64,000 nucleotides of DNA from Paraphysomonas bandaiensis (taxonomy: Eukaryota > Protista > Chrysophyceae): assembly GCA_965644295.1 (NCBI GenBank), contig CBFFRP010000365.1, positions 62,001 to 126,000 of the forward strand, in the 5' to 3' direction. The position numbers and the translations under genes were made by a program. The stretch's first letter is position 1, and each line of letters starts with the position of its first letter. Shown here in pieces: positions 26,571 to 38,938 of the stretch. The notes beneath the pieces were generated by a model. The model saw nothing but the letters and a program-made list of their open reading frames with translations. It was not told the origin of the DNA and made no database searches.

Positions 26571-29500
26571 TCAAAATGAACTTTTCAGGACGGAGCATAA
26601 CATCCGCATATCTGTTCGACGTATCGATGTACCATGAAGAGTTTCCGCTTCCCCAAGTGATCCCAATATCATGGCAACCACAGTACTCAGGCTATGACCA
26701 GTGGAGTTTGATATCCCGCCGCGCAAATCATCCTTAAAAGGTAGCAAATGCATAATGATTTCCTTTAGCCATTCGATACGTAGAGTAAAGCCCTGGTGTA
26801 GCCATTGATGTACAAAACATTAGCTACCACATACTATACGAATTTACTATGAATAACACAGTTGCGCACTACATGATTCATAGAACAAAATATGTATAGT
26901 ACAAAAACTACATATGTATCTATGTACCTCGCTTGGTTCTGATTTCGACAGGTTTGCAGCAAGTTGCTGAGCTGTGCACAGTAAAGGCACCGCCTATACA
27001 ACACCCCATGAACAAAATACAAAGCACTAAATACGCTCAGTACGTCGTCAGAAATATAAACAGAAAGCACGTCGAATGCAAGCTAATACCATTTTTATGA
27101 AATAAGCAGTGGGTACAGAAATGTATATACAATTTCTATTTACTGCTACACAAAATGGGATGACATCTCAGAGATAGCAACTGGTCATAAGCTCACCTCA
27201 GTAGTTTCTAAGAGCGCCCCAATAGAACCTGTATCTTCTTGCTGTTTCTTGAGTATCCAAATAACATTTTCGACGTCTTTTCCCTCTAGCGCAACCTCTA
27301 AACTCTCCGCTATACGGCCCTATATAAACAACACATACCAATTTTAAAAAATGTATTTCGGTGCGCCGAACATTTCCTGAGAGTTCTCGTAGAATTTCTA
27401 TGCTTAGTCATCAACAATAACGAAACACACCTCTTTAAACAGCACTACATGGTCCGTCTCAGTCTGCATTCCCCTAGGAATTGAACTGCTGGTCAATCCT
27501 GACTTCAATGCAGCCAATATTGTGGCAGTTTGAGCCTCCAAGGCCTCCGCATGGACACGTGACATGTCATGTAAACGGGTTTCAAGCACATGTACCGACG
27601 ACCGAAGCTCAGCGACCTGCGCCACCAATATGAAAGAGTGAAAGCGAATGGTGCATGTCATGTCACATCAGTATTACCTCTTGCTTCAAATTCTCATTGT
27701 CGGCCATGGCAGCATCGTGTACTGCCTTGCTATGAGCCATCATCGCCTGCATACCCGTATCGAAAGTCTGCAGAGACCAGCACATTACACAATGCCGACA
27801 TTCGTATATTCCAGTGATGCATAACGCAAACATTCAATGTCCACACATAAACATGACATATCGAGATTTTATACGACTCCACATTGTGTAAATACCTGTT
27901 GCATTTGCTGAAACATTTCTTGGGCACCTGCTTGATATGCTGGGATGATGGTCGCTTCGAATGCAGCTCGGAAGGACTTAACAAGAGTGGGTCGCAGGTT
28001 GTCCTTGACAGAATCACGGACAGCATCTTTAGACGACTGGGAGATGAATGGACCAAGTTCTGTTCTTAAGTCCGACGAAATTTGATTTGACAACTGAAAA
28101 AACTAAGTCAGTATATACAATATACATGCACTAGGGTCAAATGTGAACATCTACTACATATGAGATGTGCTGACCAGGTTTTTATGCAGGAAGTACAGAT
28201 ATCACATACGGTGCATACCTCTTCTCGCCACTGTTCAGATCCCAGAATTTTGGCCACTGCTTGTTGAGACTGCTTCTCTGCCATGGCCTTGACCGTTCCA
28301 AGCATTTGCTTCTCAACACCTTTTCATATAAAACATCATGAACAGATAATCGGGATTGCCATATTTCAAATGAGACAGCACATCACACTATTTTGCACAC
28401 ACACCTTTGAGAACATCTTGCACTATATGGGCTCGAAGGTCCACTATATTTTTGGTGCTGAGGTCTGCCGATTTGGTTTTAGATGTTGCCTGCACAACGC
28501 ATACGCCATATTAGCAAGTGCTCCTACATATATGCGTGTACTACAACGATATATACTGTTACATATGTGAAACTGTTCAAACCTTATCATGCAGAGATTG
28601 CACCATCCTGGCCATATTGTTGACTTTAGCATTGACTGTTTCCAAAGTTATTTTATCGACACCTATCACATCCTTTGTCAACTGCTTTTCAGGCACACTC
28701 TTAGGTGTATTTTGTTGCGAATTGGATATGGTCTGCGATGCTATTTCCCATTCGTCCTCGTCCTCTTCTCTTGTTGACTTTCTTTTTTGTTGTTGATCAA
28801 CTTTTATCTCAGGTGTTCCGGGCTCTTGAGCTTGGACTTCTTGGACAACTGCAGCTACTTTGAGAGTGGACTCAGTTCCACCCATTAGGGCATTCAGATC
28901 TACCGGGATTTTCCTAGATTTTCCTTGACTCCCTTCGACATTCGAGCTTGAATACGAAGCATCTTCATTCTTCGGCTTGGCAAATGGGATCACCGGCGGA
29001 CCTCTTGTTTCAGTTTTCACAGGTAGTTTCGCTTCCTGAATCGAAGAGGGTCCGTTGCTCCCATCACTAGTTCCACGCATTGACGCCTCAGCGGCAACAG
29101 GTTTTGACTTCAGCGCACTCAAAAGGAGATTTTTACTCTTCACCCCGATATCTACACTGTCGCTTGGGAGAGACGAGGTAGACCCAGAGGCCACAGTTAC
29201 AGTTGAACCTGGCTTAGCTGAACCTTCCTTCTTTACAGCGAAATCAGGGAATGCGCCTGGTGGTAGCGTCGTGTCCGAGCTAATAAAAGAGATGCCCGCA
29301 GTTCCTCCAGACAGTGGTGAAGGAGCCGTGGGGAGAGAAATGGATGTGGTTGGGGGAGTTGAAGGCTCCCTATCTTCTGTAGGCTCATCCGACGATTTCA
29401 CTGATGTTTGAGCTATTGGCTGCTCTTGTGCATCAGTGGTGGGAGGAGATACCACGCCTTTGATCACATTATGCCCCATATTATCAGCGGTTTCAGTGTT

Positions 29501-32500
29501 TTTGCTCGCTGCCCCACCCTCATCAGCCCCACTATAAGAGTCATCTAAGTTGACAAGGTTCAAAATTTCAGCTTCCAAAGTGGAGTCTACACTATCATTT
29601 CGCGTCTCTCTCTTTGCTTGCACAGGCGGTTCTTTCGGCTGAACCCAGTCACAAGGAACATTATATTGTTTGACTGCTAACTGGTTAGATAGCTGATCTT
29701 GCATACATGTTACCACAACATGGGGGGCCTGACCCTCGTTGGCCCCATCTTGAAGAAACATAGTGCCAGCTAATACACTAGTCACAGGAAGCTTCAGATC
29801 AAGGAAAGTACAGTGATAAAACGGCATCCCAGCTGAGGATGCACCGTGATTCAGAGCAACACAGGCCACAGCATAGCAAGAGCTGCACAGATGTTAGTAT
29901 TACTTAAGACACTCATCGATATCCTATTCTTGGTTAATACAACATAAACAGGAAACAGCATACTAAGCACAGTTACAACAATATAAGATCGACCTCAGCA
30001 TTATATATTTTGCAATCACTAGCATTTTGCTTCAAAGATTGTTCGCATTATACTTATCATTGGTCGATACAATATATACACAATAACACATATATTGTAG
30101 TTTCATCATCATTCGCAACTGGTTTGCTTCAAAGATTGTGTACATTACAAGTATCATTTGTTAATACAACACAAACAAGAAATAGCATATCAGTTAGATA
30201 TACGTCAGGCATATATCGACCTCAGCAAAAATTTTTGCAATCACTAGCATTTTGCTTCAAAGATTGTTCACATTATACTTATCATTGGTCGATTTTACAT
30301 ATACACAATAACACATATATTATAGTTTCATCATCATTCGCAACTGGTTGCTTCAAAGATTGTGTACATTACAAGTATCATTTGTTAATACAACACAAAC
30401 AAGAAATAGCATATCAGTTAGATATACGTCAGGCATATATCGACCTCAGCATTATATTTTGCAATCACTAGCATTTTGCTTCAAAGATTGTTCACATTAT
30501 ACTTATCATTGGTCGATTTTACATATACACAATAACACATATATTGTAGTTTCATCATCATTCGCAACTGGTTTGCTTCAAAGATTGTGTACATTACAAG
30601 TATCATTTGTTAATACAACACAAAACAGGAAATAGCATATCAGTTAGATATACGTCAGGCATATATCGACCTCAGCATTATATTTTGCAATCACTAGCAT
30701 TTTGCCTCAAAGATTGTTCACATTATACTTATCATTGGTCGATACTACATATACACAATAACACATATATTATAGTTTCATCATCATTCGCAACTGGTTT
30801 GCTTTAAAGATTGTGTACATAAAAAGTATCATTGGTTAATACAACACAAACAAGAAATAGCATATCAGTTAGATATACGTCAGGCATATATCGACCTCAG
30901 CAATATATTATGCAATCACTAGCATTTTGCTTCAAAGATTGTTCACATTATACTTATCATTGGTCGATACTACATATACACAATAACACATATATTATAG
31001 TTTCATCATCATTCGCAACTGGTTTGCTTTAAAGATTGTGTACATAAAAAGTATCATTGGTTAATACAACACAAACAAGAAATAGCATATCAGTTAGATA
31101 TACGTCAGGCATATATCGACCTCAGCATTATATTATGCAATCACTAGCATTTTGCTTCAAAGATTGTTCACATTATACTTATCATTGGTCGATACTACAT
31201 ATACACAATAACACATATATTGTAGTTTCATCATCATTCGCAACTGGTTTGCTTCAAAGATTGTGTACATTACAAGTATCATTTGTTAATACAACACAAA
31301 ACAGGAAATAGCATATCAGTTAGATATACGTCAGGCATATATCGACCTCAGCATTATATTATGCAATCACTAGCATTTTGCTTCAAAGATTGTTCACATT
31401 ATACTTATCATTGGTCGATTTTACATATACACAATAACACATATATTATAGTTTCATCATCATTCGCAACTGGTTTGCTTCAAAGATTGTGTACATTACA
31501 AGTATCATTTGTTAATACAACACAAACAAGAAATAGCATATCAGTTAGATATACGTCAGGCATATATCGACCTCAGCATTATATTATGCAATCACTAGCA
31601 TTTTGCTTCAAAGATTGTTCACATTATACTTATCATTGGTCGATACTACATATACACAATAACACATATATTGTAGTTTCATCATCATTCGCAACTGGTT
31701 TGCTTCAAAGATTGTGTACATTACAAGTATCATTTGTTAATACAACACAAAACAGGAAATAGCATATCAGTTAGATATACGTCAGGCATATATCGACCTC
31801 AGCATTATATTATGCAATCACTAGCATTTTGCTTCAAAGATTGTTCACATTATACTTATCATTGGTCGATTTTACATATACACAATAACACATATATTAT
31901 AGTTTCATCATCATTCGCAACTGGTTTGCTTTAAAGATTGTGTACATAATAAGTATCATTGGTTAATACAACACAAACAAGAAATAGCATATCAGTTAGA
32001 TATACGTCAGGCATATATCGACCTCAGCATTATATTATGCAATCACTAGCATTTTGCTTCAAAGATTGTTCACATTATACTTATCATTGGTCGATACTAC
32101 ATATACACAATAACACATATATTATAGTTTCATCATCATTCGCAACTGGTTTGCTTCAAAGATTGTGTACATTACAAGTATCATTGGTTAATACAACACA
32201 AACAAGAAATAGCATATCAGTTAGATATACGTCAGGCATATATCGACCTCAGCATTATATTATGCAATCACTAGCATTTTGCTTCAAAGATTGTTCACAT
32301 TATACTTATCATTGGTCGATACTACATATACACAATAACACATATATTATAGTTTCATCATCATTCGCAACTGGTTTGCTTCAAAGATTGTGTACATTAC
32401 AAGTATCATTTGTTAATACAACACAAAACAGGAAATAGCATATCAGTTAGATATACGGCAGGCATATATCGACCTCAGCATTATATTTTGCAATCACTAG

Positions 32501-35500
32501 CATTTTGCTTCAAAGATTGTTCACATTATACTTATCATTGGTCGATACTACATATACACAATAACACATATATTATAGTTTCATCATCATTCGCAACTGG
32601 TTGCTCCAAAGATTGTGTACATAATAAGTATCATTTGTTAATACAACACAAACAAGAAATAGCATATCAGTTAGATATACGTCAGGCATATATCGACCTC
32701 AGCATTATATTATGCAATCACTAGCATTTTGCTTCAAAGATTGTTCACATTATACTTATCATTGGTCGATACTACATATACACAATAACACATATATTAT
32801 AGTTTCATCATCATTCGCAACTGGTTTGCTTCAAAGATTGTGTACATTACAAGTATCATTTGTTAATACAACACAAAACAGGAAATAGCATATCAGTTAG
32901 ATATACGTCAGGCATATATCGACCTCAGCATTATATTATGCAATCACTAGCATTTTGCTTCAAAGATTGTTCACATTATACTTATCATTGGTCGATACTA
33001 CATATACACAATAACACATATATTATAGTTTCATCATCATTCGCAACTGGTTTGCTTCAAAGATTGTGTACATTACAAGAATCATTGGTTAATACAACAC
33101 AAACAAGAAATAGCATATCAGTTAGATATACGTCAGGCATATATCGACCTCAGCATTATATTATGCAATCACTAGCATTTTGCTTCAAAGATTGTTCACA
33201 TTATACTTATCATTGGTCGATACTACATATACACAATAACACATATATTATAGTTTCATCATCATTCGCAACTGGTTTGCTTCAAAGATTGTGTACATTA
33301 CAAGTATCATTTGTTAATACAACACAAAACAGGAAATAGCATATCAGTTAGATATACGTCAGGCATATATCGACCTCAGCATTATATTTTGCAATCACTA
33401 GCATTTTGCTTCAAAGATTGTTCACATTATACTTATCATTGGTCGATACTACATATACACAATAACACATATATTATAGTTTCATCATCATTCGCAACTG
33501 GTTGCTCCAAAGATTGTGTACATAATAAGTATCATTTGTTAATACAACACAAACAAGAAATAGCATATCAGTTAGATATACGTCAGGCATATATCGACCT
33601 CAGCATTATATTATGCAATCACTAGCATTTTGCTTCAAAGATTGTTCACATTATACTTATCATTGGTCGATACTACATATACACAATAACACATATATTA
33701 TAGTTTCATCATCATTCGCAACTGGTTTGCTTCAAAGATTGTGTACATTACAAGTATCATTTGTTAATACAACACAAAACAGGAAATAGCATATCAGTTA
33801 GATATACGGCAGGCATATATCGACCTCAGCATTATATTTTGCAATCACTAGCATTTTGCTTCAAAGATTGTTCACATTATACTTATCATTGGTCGATACT
33901 ACATATACACAATAACACATATATTATAGTTTCATCATCATTCGCAACTGGTTGCTCCAAAGATTGTGTACATAATAAGTATCATTTGTTAATACAACAC
34001 AAACAAGAAATAGCATATCAGTTAGATATACGTCAGGCATATATCGACCTCAGCATTATATTATGCAATCACTAGCATTTTGCTTCAAAGATTGTTCACA
34101 TTATACTTATCATTGGTCGATACTACATATACACAATAACACATATATTATAGTTTCATCATCATTCGCAACTGGTTTGCTTCAAAGATTGTGTACATTA
34201 CAAGTATCATTTGTTAATACAACACAAAACAGGAAATAGCATATCAGTTAGATATACGGCAGGCATATATCGACCTCAGCATTATATTTTGCAATCACTA
34301 GCATTTTGCTTCAAAGATTGTTCACATTATACTTATCATTGGTCGATACTACATATACACAATAACACATATATTATAGTTTCATCATCATTCGTAACTG
34401 GTTGCTTCAAAGATTGTGTACATTACAAGTATCATTTGTTAATACAACACAAACAGGAAATAGCATATCAGTTAGATATACGTCAGGCATATATCGACCT
34501 CAGCATTATATTTTGCAATCACTAGCATTTTGCTTCAAAGATTGTTCACATTATACTTATCATTGGTCGATACTACATATACACAATAACACATATATTA
34601 TAGTTTCATCATCATTCGTAACTGGTTGCTTCAAAGATTGTGTACATTACAAGTATCATTTGTTAATACAACACAAACAGGAAATAGCATATCAGTTAGA
34701 TATACGTCAGGCATATATCGACCTCAGCATTATATTTTGCAATCACTAGCATTTTGCTTCAAAGATTGTTCACATTATACTTATCATTGGTCGATACTAC
34801 ACAGATACAAAAACATACATTGCAGTAATTTGAGGCAAATACATTGTTCATATAGTGTGTCATGTGCTGCTATTGAAATCATCATAAGTGCACTTTGTTT
34901 TGTGGAACATTTCAAGTCGTACCTGTTTGTGATAATAGCATATTGGCCCCCAGCTGAATCCAACGTAATTGACAACACATCTGTTGTACCCGAGGCATGT
35001 CTGGGTAGGTGAATGTGAACTTGTTGCTGTATAGTGGACTCCTCGGATGGAGTAATTTTATGGGCAGAGAGAAGCATTGAGTCTTTTGCTGAGGTCAGTG
35101 TTAGCAGTGACCAAGAGTTGCAGGTGACATCGCCGGAATTGTTGGGCATAAAGGCAAGTCCAGAACATGGGCTGGAAGAAGATATGGTGGAAAACGGCTC
35201 CACTTCGCCCTGCCCACGGTGGATCTGACAATAATTCTAGTTATCCCACGAGCATATACACGAGAACATTGATCACCACTATTGAATTGTTCAAACAGTG
35301 CAATCGATGAATGTTACCACTTACCGAACTGACACCACTAGCACCTTGCGGGAGTTTAAATACACCAATAGTACAGTCTGCTTCGTTTACAACAGCTAAC
35401 AAGGCTCCATCGCTAGAAAATGCAAAATCTACATTTGAATAATATATATGTCAACTACAGTAGAAAGCAGATATAAAAATGACCTGCAACGTTGTCGTTG

Positions 35501-36132
35501 AAATTCAAGTGCAGTGCAAAATCAATATAACGGCTCGGAGGTGAGCCCCGCTTTTCTAAGTCATTTACATGTTGCGCGGAGAAAATCGACAACTCATTCT
35601 TGTGAGAAATAGCCCACACATCTTCTGAAAGAGGATGTCCTCTTACTATAGTAGCAGGAAATGGTAGTTTTGTCACCATAACATGTCCGAGAGTGGAGTC
35701 ATTATAGGTCATTCTCCACACATGGACAGCACCAGCATCCCCACCATCAACAGAACACAGTACATCACTTGAACAAGATGAAAATTTGATATCAACTACA
35801 GCACTAGTATGACCACGTAATAATTCTTTACTACCTGTTGCTGTATGAATTATACGAAGTAAATTCCCTTTGACAATATAACAGATATAATTATCACTAA
35901 CAGCAATACAATAACGATAAGTTTGAGGTTCATTTTTCATGAAACAAACTGTTTGACATTTAGGAATTAATGCATGATCTTTATGATATTCACATGTATG
36001 TACTTTATGTACAATCGCTTCACCATGACACCTACATATAGAATTAATAGAATACAAGATATATGCATAGAATATCTACTTGGAATGAATGTCCGCTTGA
36101 AAGGCATCACCAATTAAATGTGTATAATCCAT
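26571..36132 (-). CDS. EDC4: Enhancer of mRNA decapping 4 / VARICOSE (WD40, low-complexity linker, helical C-terminus), multi-exon
   Basis: N-terminal WD40 IAVSDNYICY...LRIIH...LLRGHTSAVVDIKF; helical SFRAAFEATIIPAYQAGAQEMFQQM; C-terminal LLCTAQQLA, RIEWLKEII. Contains a 5040-nt intron at 29883-34922. Confidence 0.88.
29930..34802. repeat. ~225-bp tandem repeat, ~22 copies, inside one EDC4 intron
   Basis: CGACCTCAGC recurs every 224-227 bp from 29990 to 34719; each unit has an internal partial duplication (TTGCTTCAAAGATTGT twice). Confidence 0.98.
29988..34796 (-). ncRNA. Tandem cluster of ~22 putative box C/D snoRNA copies (~80 nt each, e.g. 34716-34796 and 29988-30068); D' guide to LSU rRNA A-loop uridine (yeast Um2921, snR52-like target)
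   Basis: Minus strand: TATCGACC-A-ATGATAA (C)...GTGAACAATCT-TTGA (D')...GTGATTG (C')...CTGA (D)-GGTCGATA. Terminal stem of 7-8 bp. The guide is complementary to conserved LSU GGAUUGUUCAC, with the fifth nucleotide upstream of D' opposite the U preceding G. Confidence 0.72.
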
Positions 36133-36814
36133 TCGAATGATAGTTTTCACTGATTGTATGTATTAGTTGAGTTAATAGATTGGTATGAACTATACATACA
36201 TCTCAAGTAGTGTGGCTATGTAATGACTGTCATCGTATTGGCAGTCAGCATCTTATTTTTCGGAAATAAATTGAAGCAAATATAATCTATATAATAGCAG
36301 TATAAATACGGCTGGAATACAGATAGTTGTTGTCTCAATATATGAGGCATCATGGAACAAAAATATACATACGATATTGTCCAATACAGGAACCATTATT
36401 TCTTGAACTGAATTATCTCTTTAAGATACTATCGAAGATTTTCACTCTATATAAACAGAAAATGTCTTTACAAGATACTAAACTTGTGGTATTGTGTTGA
36501 AGTGAATCTAAATATATCCATTTTATTGCATAAAAATCCATTTTCTAACACATTTCTCATATATTTCTACTATTTTCTTCTTAATATTCACATAGATACA
36601 ACTTTCCATAAATTTTTAGAAAATCTCTTCAATAATAAACTGAAAATGACTCTTCAAGGTACTTATTTTCTATACTATCCAACTCGTAATGCTCTCATGC
36701 TATAGAACTCAACATATATATACATATACATCCATCCACGTCTAGTTCCTACATTAAAATCTAGACTTAAAGATCAAAGAGTTGATTGATTCATCAATAA
36801 AGTGATCGCGGATC

Positions 36815-38938
36815 ATGTCGCTTGGATCTATGGTAAGATTACTAGATTATTGTTATCAGTATTAACCAATACAATAGCCTTGTATTGTCTGTGACAATGG
36901 TACTGGATTTGTTAAGGTAACTATCCATATATATACACGTATACTCTCTCAAATACCACCATGAATACAGGTCGGATATGCTGGACAAAACTTTCCATCC
37001 CATATATATCCATCAATGGTGGGAAGGCCTATACTCCGTGCAGAGGAGGCTGTATCTGAAACATTAGAGTTAAAGGAAGTCATGTGTGGAGATGAGGCAG
37101 CAGCTGTCAGACATTCACTTGATATTAAATATCCAGTAAGTATCTTCTTCTATATGATATGTATGTGTGTGTTTCATATGTATGTATTCAATTAAGACCA
37201 ATGATAAATATTATGTGAACAATCTTTGAAGCAAAACGCTTGTGATTGCAATATTTTACTGCTGAGGTCGATCTATTTGATGTAACTGTAATCAGTATTA
37301 TTACATTCGTATTTACGATTGTATTGAGATGTGATATTGGAAATATATTATTTTTGAGTGCTTTTATTTGCTAGGTTGACAATGGTATTGTTAAAAACTG
37401 GGATGATATGGAGCATCTATGGAATTACACCTTCTTCGAAAAACTCCAGGTATGCACCAGACCTTATGCGCGTATATATGAGTCCGTTAATGACCTTACC
37501 TATTATAATTATGCTAATATTTTTGTGCTAGATTAACCCTGCGGAGAACAAGATCTTACTTACCGAACCGCCAATGAATCCTGCCAAGAATAGAGAGAGA
37601 CTCGTCGAGAAGATGTTTGAAACTTACCAATTCGGAGCTGCCAATGTGTCTATTCAGGCTATGCTTACACTATATGCCCAGGGGTTACTTACAGGTGTGT
37701 GGACGCGGCTATGATATGCGGTACATTGCTTTTTATTTTACACGTTACTCGCATGTCGAGGTCACTGCTAGTTGCATTCCCTAAATGCTATATATATATG
37801 TAAAACACGAAAAAGATTATAGGTGACTGTTTTGTGATTTTTCTTCTATTTCATAGGAGTTGTTGTGGACACTGGAGATGGCGTTACTCATGTTGTACCG
37901 GTTTATGATGGGTTTGTACCTCAAAACTTAATTCGACGTCTTGATGTTGCTGGCCGACACATCACGAACTATTTCATTAAATTGCTTATGCTTCGTGGAT
38001 ATGCATTCAACCGGACGGCTGACTTCGAGACAGTGCGCCAGATTAAGGAGAAGATGTGCTACGTGGCATATGATATCAACCAAGAGAGGTCACTTGCACA
38101 GGAGACCACATGCTTGATGGAGACTTACACTTTACCGGATGGAAGGGTAATTAAAATGGGCAGAGAGCGCTTCGAGGCTCCTGAGGCCCTCTTTAACCCC
38201 CACCTCATTGATTGTGAGAAAGTGAGTTTGTTACTTCTATTGCATTATTGATTTTAATTATTATACCTGTTAAAAGGTGGGAATGGCCGATATGGTGTTT
38301 GAGATGATTCAAAGCGCTGATATTGATACCAGAGCTGAATACTACAAGCACATCGTGTTGTCAGGTGTGTAGTGCTCTATATTGGGAGGCATATATGCGT
38401 ATTAGATGAAACTGTGTGAGGAAATAAAATCAATCACCATCTTTCAACTGAGGCTCTGCCACTGTTGACAATAGATCCCAACATGTTCTGACAGTTTCGC
38501 TACGTATTATATGAAATGTTGCATTTTTATTTGCTTCAATATATGTCCTTTTTTCGATGATTTCTTTTATGTTCCATAGGTGGTTCTTCTATGTATCCTG
38601 GTCTGCCATCACGCTTGGAGAAGGATATTAAAGATAGGTACCTAAATGAAGTACTCAAGGGCAATGTGGATAGGTACGTGTGTAAGCATAACTTTGTGTA
38701 TGTAAGAAGTTTGTTAATATGTACGAGCATGTATAAGCAAAGCGTGACGTTACTGTTTATCAGGATGAAGAAGTTTAAGATCAAGATTGAAGATCCTCCA
38801 CGAAGAAAACATATGGTGTTCCTGGGTGGATCTGTGCTGGCCGACATCATGAAAGATCGTAATGAGTTTTGGATGACTAAGCAAGACTATGATGAAGGAG
38901 GTCTGAGAGCTGTCCTCAGTAAGATTGGAAAATCTTGA
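36815..38938 (+). CDS. ARP2: Actin-related protein 2, multi-exon
   Basis: [74 protein letters not shown] (ARP2-specific). Confidence 0.96.
37196..37269 (+). ncRNA. Intronic box C/D snoRNA, single-copy paralog of the array module (LSU A-loop Um guide)
   Basis: GACC-A-ATGATAA (37201-37207)...GTGAACAATCT (37215-37225)-TTGA...GTGATTG...CTGA (37262-37265)-GGTC. Sense orientation in an ARP2 intron, 105 nt upstream of the 3' splice site. Confidence 0.78.
38408..38498 (+). ncRNA. Intronic double-guide box C/D snoRNA (D' guide to LSU Am807-equivalent, snR39/snR59-like target)
   Basis: 7-bp stem GAAACTG/CAGTTTC; C box GTGAGGA (38416); 12-nt guide TCACCATCTTTC, complementary to conserved LSU GAAAGAUGGUGA, before D' CTGA (38448); guide TCCCAACA before D CTGA (38488) matches the adjacent UGUUGGGA. 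Confidence 0.85.

Follow-up and report, generated by a model that had tools for sequence, protein, structure and literature searches.

Does a long, homogeneous array of short tandem repeats in an intron represent an inert satellite, or may it be a cluster of working genes? This question is raised by a 64,000-nt stretch of the genome of the chrysophyte Paraphysomonas bandaiensis (assembly GCA_965644295.1, contig CBFFRP010000365.1, positions 62,001 to 126,000 of the forward strand; hereafter the window, whose numbering is used throughout), where one intron of a gene resembling EDC4/Ge-1 holds 22 copies of a module built like a small nucleolar RNA (snoRNA) of the box C/D type. From the sequence and from comparisons with reads, ribosomal RNA (rRNA) and other genomes we consider the array to be probably a tandemly amplified cluster of 22 working box C/D guide snoRNA genes, predicted to direct methylation of the A-loop uridine of the large subunit (LSU) rRNA.

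Tandem Repeats Finder (TRF) reports a single array with a period of 225 bp, 21.4 copies, 97% matches and zero indels, in an AT-rich region (GC content ~0.30 vs. ~0.39 in the surroundings). On the minus strand, the sequence CCAAUGAUAA, taken as an anchor, recurs every 224-226 bp, 22 times in all; the array was divided into its 22 units, which were then aligned to each other. The array and its outermost copies are as follows:

29988..34815, minus strand: tandem array of 22 intact snoRNA modules with a 225-bp unit (TRF, anchor pattern and unit alignment)
34715..34795, minus strand: first copy (1); the 5' splice site precedes it by ~127 nt
29988..30068, minus strand: last copy (22); the 3' splice site follows it at a distance of 104 nt, and no other copy has an altered guide (GCGAACAAUCU)

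In units 3-12 (window positions 30500-33000) two variant types alternate (alignment columns 125 and 128), which amounts to a 450-bp higher-order repeat in the middle of the array and shows that the expansion proceeded in part by two-unit (450-bp) steps. In form, the array is a satellite DNA, i.e. long, arranged head-to-tail, with a short and homogenised unit and a higher-order periodicity; a function as genes stays compatible with this form.

Tandem repeats are often mis-sized in assemblies, and an initial annotation of the window, which had proposed a ~22-copy array of 225-bp units, came with the caveat that the assembly may affect the copy number. The count and the unit have been borne out, and the caveat is removed by read depth. 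Run X3 is taken to be a DNA library because its coverage is even across introns and intergenic DNA, and there the unitig of the module (its invariant 5' part) has a depth of 2419, as compared to 98-107 for the adjacent single-copy contigs. The ratio of 22.6-24.6, obtained from per-contig unitig depths (summed depths are not copy numbers), gives ~23-25 copies in this independent run and therefore argues that the array is not an assembly artefact. The unitigs that hold polymorphic sites have depths of 1262-1772, fitting subsets of copies, and the copies bear distinct variants in an ordered pattern, which makes it hardly credible that one or a few copies were multiplied by the assembly. Run X13 is of low coverage; one of its unitigs, 224 nt long, reaches a depth of 20 vs. 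2-5.7 for single-copy pieces, i.e. roughly 4-10-fold. Array size may thus differ between the labelled organisms, although the coverage of X13 is too low for certainty. The sequence of the locus occurs in sequencing runs under four organism labels and in marine metatranscriptomes.

Every unit comprises one full box C/D module of ~81 nt on the minus strand, all elements of which are present in 22 of the 22 copies. In the 5'-3' direction, its first part consists of the stem arm (U)AUCGACC, the C box AUGAUAA, a 7-nt spacer, the guide GUGAACAAUCU and the D' box UUGA, while the second part consists of the hairpin AGCA-AAA-UGCU, the C' box GUGAUUG, an AU-rich stretch of 12-14 nt, the D box CUGA and the stem arm GGUCGAU(A). 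The arms AUCGACC/GGUCGAU form a terminal stem of 7-8 bp (8 bp in most copies), which adjoins the D box. In the predicted fold of the module this stem is closed, with an energy of -18.5 kcal/mol (z -2.9; 0 of 200 shuffles as good). The D' and C' boxes are separated by a 3-4-bp hairpin and both are degenerate; internal D'/C' boxes usually are. One of the copies may serve as a representative:

30215..30293, minus strand: intact module of copy 21 (sequence, fold, generic C/D matches in Rfam)
30261..30271, minus strand: D' guide GUGAACAAUCU of copy 21, which pairs with GGAUUGUUCAC of the LSU rRNA

With permissive thresholds, 851 nt of the array gave 36 weak matches in Rfam, of which 35 were to box C/D families; these 35 lie without exception on the minus strand and cover the module over the full length of the respective model. 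The best were to SNORD91 (25.8 bits), snoZ162 (23.6 bits) and snR52 (20.1 bits). In a stretch of the same size taken from elsewhere as a control, there were four weak matches, none of them to a snoRNA. The module has the generic C/D architecture, yet it belongs to no curated Rfam family. A longer snoRNA, extending from a canonical AUGAUGA in the spacer to the D box of the module, was considered and rejected, as it lacks a terminal stem and has only a 22-bit match to snoR23 (E 6).

What would such an RNA guide? The 11-nt D' guide and GGAUUGUUCAC of the organism's own LSU rRNA can form 10 Watson-Crick pairs and one G-U pair, the latter adjoining D'. In this register, the fifth nucleotide from D' faces the U of UUGUU in the A-loop (helix 92), the equivalent of Um2921 of yeast and U2552 of E. 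coli. Both this target and the register selecting the Um2921 equivalent had been proposed in the initial annotation, and both hold for the rRNA of the organism itself. The sequence GGATTGTTCACCCAC is present twice in the genome and both occurrences are LSU rRNA according to RF02543 (1512 and 450 bits). The local sequence at the target is GUAGGAUUGUUCACCCACUAACAGGGAAC; the U on which the methyl would fall and the G and U after it are Um2921, Gm2922 and Psi2923 in yeast numbering. Among 3000 random 11-mers with the composition of the module, 26 (0.9%) pair anywhere in 5.6 kb of rRNA, and a chance match to exactly the A-loop site in the right register is far less likely than that. The 5.6 kb used in all rRNA comparisons come from the rDNA pieces of the genome, with LSU positions ~300-1470 not among them; these pieces are scattered across many short contigs (L011, L012, L021 and others), and one conserved LSU pattern matched nothing. 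Within the compared sequence, i.e. outside LSU positions ~300-1470, nothing matches the D-guide stretch, which precedes the D box. Because this stretch is also the most variable part of the module and differs in the single-copy paralogue described below, the RNA is best read as a single-guide snoRNA, given the part of the LSU rRNA that was compared. The A-loop Um is the one ribose methylation known to be shared with bacteria. In yeast it is a site guided by snR52, with Spb1 as a back-up (PMC11121408). Spb1 is a stand-alone methyltransferase, which in yeast backs up this site or acts next to it. The genome studied here also encodes a Spb1 homologue (Spb1_C domain, 73.8 bits, contig C90:52599-53103, L084), so the site may have a protein back-up, as in yeast.

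The 22 modules lie in the sense strand of one precisely spliced intron. Its limits are given exactly by a 3.2-kb RNA contig of run X10, which spans positions 35891-35484, 35428-35325 and 35224-34923, followed by letters identical to 29853-29882 of the window. The region used in the read comparison, 32600-38000, contains fewer than 12 array copies, so the splice junction was seen as a loose end of the contig; according to the coordinates of the open reading frames, the frame continues across the 34923/29882 junction. The other introns spliced in the same contigs have 45-239 nt, and the intron with the array is 20-100 times longer than its neighbours. Exons within each unit, considered as another possibility, find no support, since in the mRNA contig one flanking exon passes straight into the other. 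The relevant parts of the host gene are:

29883..34922, minus strand: intron of the EDC4/Ge-1-like gene, 5,040 nt, GU..AG (GUACGA...UGCAG), phase 2, holding the whole array (X10 RNA contig)
34923..35224, minus strand: EDC4-like exon on the upstream side of the array intron (covered in the RNA of both X10 and X14); the Ge1_WD40 match is in the exon next to it, 35484-36029
28577..29882, minus strand: EDC4-like exon downstream of the array intron, long, of low complexity and Ser/Pro-rich (open frame; X10 junction to 34923)

Based on the sequence of the encoded protein, we accept the host as a gene of an EDC4/Ge-1-like decapping scaffold, because the exon at 35455-36057 matches the Pfam family Ge1_WD40 (E 4.7e-7; 29.5 bits, exactly at the cut-off) and its nearest ESM Atlas cluster is also Ge1_WD40 (0.94, 187 shared features). 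The gene was compared exon by exon and not as a joined protein; a Pfam search of the C-terminal EDC4-like exons gave no match, and a PDB sequence search of two EDC4-like exons gave nothing informative. The host, the intron limits, the anatomy of the unit (stem, ATGATAA, TTGA, GTGATTG, CTGA) and its orientation in the sense strand of EDC4, as described in the initial annotation, have all been recovered, the unit elements in every copy.

Are the modules maintained as genes? Across the 22 copies, only one of the 47 columns that comprise the boxes, stems and guide varies, and the change is in an edge copy, as compared to 16 of the 148 columns in the spacer and the half-copy, where most variable columns of the array are located. 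Within the module, it is the D-guide stretch that varies most (7 of 14 columns), and the two differences found in other runs sit at already polymorphic sites of the spacer and of the D-guide stretch. An internal control is provided by the truncated copy of the module that accompanies the intact one in every unit:

30340..30395, minus strand: truncated and decayed half-copy (module B), identical to the intact module at 39 of 48 positions (81%)

This half-copy comprises a 5' flank, a ruined stem arm AUUAACA, a C box AUGAUAC, the guide GUACACAAUCU with two mismatches and UUGA. Its homology to the intact module stops in the internal loop, so it has neither a D box nor a terminal stem, and its guide has no match in the rRNA compared. 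Without a D box, the half-copy has decayed in the stem, the C box and the guide; the intact module has not.

The second comparison is with the only other relative of the unit in the genome. In a search of all 62.6 Mb, the unit matched only the array itself and a single copy, 90% identical, in an intron of the neighbouring ARP2 gene:

37196..37269, plus strand: single-copy paralogue in the ARP2 intron, 2.4 kb away and inverted with respect to the array (sequence, unit search, C/D matches in Rfam at the same coordinates)
37136..37374, plus strand: ARP2 intron of 239 nt, spliced in RNA contigs of runs X10 and X14

The ARP2 paralogue agrees with the array copies in its boxes, AUGAUAA among them, and in its D' guide, whereas divergence is seen in the D-guide stretch and in the flanks. 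With only 4 bp, its terminal stem is shorter than that in the array. The variants AAAUAUUAU and AAAACGCUUG of the ARP2 type and AAGUAUAAU and AAAAUGCUAG of the array type tell the two sources apart. For a small nucleolar ribonucleoprotein (snoRNP) to assemble, it is normally enough that a C/D module is intact and lies in sense orientation within an intron that is spliced. Moreover, the EDC4-intron array is not singular in this genome, which also keeps a U14-like snoRNA as an array of ~57 copies with 255-bp spacing (C434:87990-102345; RF00016, 41-50 bits with a gathering score of 64; L082 holds a part of it), and these copies carry a canonical AUGAUGA C box.

On the other hand, several observations weigh against a working cluster, and some of them speak for a rival explanation, namely that the array is an inert satellite born from a snoRNA gene: a block amplified in a tolerant intron, the copies of which are degraded together with the intron or are unneeded, while the ARP2 copy does the work. 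The signal of constraint described above is weak (Fisher p 0.06-0.08, not significant at 0.05), and homogenisation or concerted evolution could mimic selection. The C box, already noticed in the initial annotation as non-canonical, is AUGAUAA in 22 of the 22 array copies and in the ARP2 paralogue; it agrees with RUGAUGA at six of the seven positions and has the first GA intact, but carries A instead of G at position 6, where a G would normally form a pair with the D-box C, and a gene with the canonical sequence is present in the same genome in the form of the U14-like snoRNA. Both the single-copy ARP2 paralogue and the Spb1 homologue could make the array dispensable. The search of the whole window against Rfam at the gathering thresholds gave no match. 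RNA at the level of poly(A) and contigs is devoid of array sequence, which is expected for a spliced intron and uninformative on small non-polyadenylated RNA, and in the spacers there is no stable hairpin to indicate cleavage by RNase III (z -0.6). An inert satellite would also agree with the 97% identity, with the two-unit periodicity, with the amplification of a dead half-copy along with the intact module, and with a copy number that apparently differs between ~23-25x in X3 and roughly 4-10x in the low-coverage run X13. We nonetheless regard it as unlikely, as it demands that all 22 copies fail despite having boxes like those of the ARP2 copy and a longer terminal stem; besides, the existing changes avoid the boxes, stems and guide, and the U14-like snoRNA is likewise kept mainly as an array.

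If the array is a cluster of working genes, its expression may be envisaged as follows. Snu13, Nop58, Nop56 and fibrillarin would assemble on each module of the pre-mRNA or of the excised intron, and an endonuclease would cut in the 144-nt spacers, since in an intron with 22 modules exonucleases by themselves could release no more than the outermost ends. Each piece would then be trimmed by exonucleases as far as the snoRNP boundary, giving snoRNAs of ~80 nt, which would methylate the A-loop U alongside the ARP2-hosted copy and the encoded Spb1 homologue. A different outcome can be considered at the step of spacer cutting: the main product could be a long intron RNA capped by snoRNPs at both ends (a snoRNA-ended long non-coding RNA, sno-lncRNA) or partial multimers, with the spacers left uncut. 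There is a precedent in mammals, where introns with two snoRNAs give sno-lncRNAs with ends protected by snoRNPs (PMC4234469), and the absence of an RNase III-type hairpin from the spacers would fit it. Conversely, the intronic clusters of rice and Drosophila are treated as snoRNA-coding, as far as can be judged from their citation in PMC2780460, and array sequence is absent from the poly(A) RNA contigs, though such an RNA would not be polyadenylated; we deem uncut products quite improbable here. As to the release of individual snoRNAs, a broader proposal has, in our estimate, an even chance of being correct: the array would be the main source of the guide, with one intron yielding up to 22 snoRNAs by a spacer-cutting pathway not known to have been described in stramenopiles, and it would be a part of a genome-wide strategy, in which the rRNA-modification guides of a fast-growing marine protist are kept in arrays of 10-60 copies, as is the case with rDNA, 5S and histone genes elsewhere.

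The relationship between the two loci suggests how the array could have originated. The homology between the ARP2 and EDC4 copies reaches ~35 nt upstream and ~50 nt downstream of the module, and in both genes the snoRNA is located ~100 nt upstream of the 3' splice site. Because homology runs into both flanks, the sequence comparison points to an inverted duplication at the DNA level between the head-to-head ARP2 and EDC4-like genes, and not to retroposition. Beyond the intact module, the unit contains ~56 nt homologous to the unique sequence after the last copy and also ~40 nt that resemble the unique sequence upstream of the first copy. Thus, a segmental inverted duplication would have copied the snoRNA with its flanks between the two genes, and a 225-bp block, comprising the intact copy, the 3' flank, the broken older half-copy and the 5' flank, would then have been amplified by unequal exchange.

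A separate observation concerns the region between these genes. A ~60-bp piece of the EDC4/ARP2 intergenic DNA (36232-36292) has a unitig depth of ~99,000 in X3, vs. ~100 for single-copy sequence, and 1137 vs. ~3 in X13, with many different loose ends. It is a dispersed repeat of very high copy number, possibly the end of a small transposon.

If the array is indeed a cluster of working genes, the rule of "one snoRNA per intron", with its exceptions of a few genes, would be stretched to 22 near-identical genes in one intron of a protein-coding gene. Efficient endonucleolytic release would be needed, and the supply of the guide RNA would be tied to the transcription of a gene for a decapping scaffold. 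In practical terms, "satellites" in introns of protists are worth screening for snoRNA modules before they are masked.

Among the known systems, the closest in terms of the target is snR52 of yeast (RF01195), which has the same target nucleotide and the same core of the guide upstream of D' (GUGAACAAUCU); its site is backed up by Spb1 (PMC11121408), a homologue of which is likewise encoded in the genome with the array. There are also differences. The snR52 model gives the array module 20.1 bits, as compared to the gathering score of 45; the boxes of snR52 are UGAUGA and CUGA, while those of the array snoRNA are AUGAUAA and UUGA; snR52 has a D guide for 18S rRNA, while the corresponding stretch of the array snoRNA is AU-rich, variable and without a match in the rRNA compared. 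Finally, snR52 is one independent gene, whereas the array snoRNA is intronic and present in 22+1 copies.

Metagenome contigs were scanned with a pattern composed of the C-box core, a gap, the guide and D', which returned 60 stretches, many of them chance matches in coding DNA. Among these 60 there are also genuine snoRNAs, which share the guide and have UGAUGA and CUGA as canonical boxes; two groups of them stand out. The first has a D guide ending in GUUGCCUUCCUU before CUGA and includes a bona fide yeast snR52 (L047, 126 bits); the second is GC-rich and has another D guide (L022, L024, L061, L062, L065, L075, L076, L080). Two contigs carry tandem copies of a canonical C/D snoRNA with the A-loop guide, two in each case (L075:3391-3733 with 312-bp spacing and L062:2047-2220 with 142-bp spacing). 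When eight metagenome contigs with the guide were compared with Rfam, only L047 was recognised and the examples from outside yeast matched no model; for this reason, the failure of the snR52 model on the array says little about orthology. No synteny was seen, as ARP2- and EDC4-like exons are both absent from all 60 contigs in which the guide pattern occurs. Judging from sequence, then, snoRNA guidance of the A-loop uridine may be placed in a stramenopile-type protist and in several eukaryotes of the metagenomes. The presence of the guide in them is of interest because a review (PMC11542601) gives the protein enzyme FTSJ3 for this uridine in human and has no snoRNA for it in Arabidopsis. If the broader proposal made above, with the array as the main source of the guide, is right, a corollary would be that snoRNA guidance of the universally conserved A-loop Um is ancestral and widespread, and not a peculiarity of yeast.

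In its gene organisation, the locus comes nearest to the snoRNA clusters that lie in introns of rice and Drosophila. The clusters of Liang et al. (2002) and Huang et al. (2005) reportedly hold a few, mostly different snoRNAs, whereas the intron of the EDC4-like gene contains a single snoRNA in 22 satellite-like repeats with an identity of 97%. What is shared, as far as these clusters are cited in PMC2780460, is the presence of several sense-strand snoRNA genes per host intron, implying cuts between them. In copy number and homogeneity, the array is comparable to mammalian SNORD115 and SNORD116 in SNHG14, which likewise form tens of near-identical tandem C/D copies in one transcription unit (PMC11608373). 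These, however, have one intron per copy, in repeated exon-intron units of a non-coding host, and are without a known rRNA target, whereas the array occupies one intron of a protein-coding host and its snoRNA has a canonical, conserved target in rRNA. The third parallel is with the guide snoRNA genes of Euglena, which, according to Moore and Russell (2012), reportedly occur in reiterated tandem clusters and are transcribed polycistronically. The same organisation and polycistronic transcription are found in trypanosomatids (PMC2780460). Unlike the array, the clusters of both these groups are not known to be intronic and usually include several snoRNAs per repeat, while the array is intronic and contains one snoRNA. 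Intronic and tandem snoRNA clusters as such are thus already known, and what appears to be new, by comparison with all these systems, is a homogeneous 22-fold array of one snoRNA in one intron.

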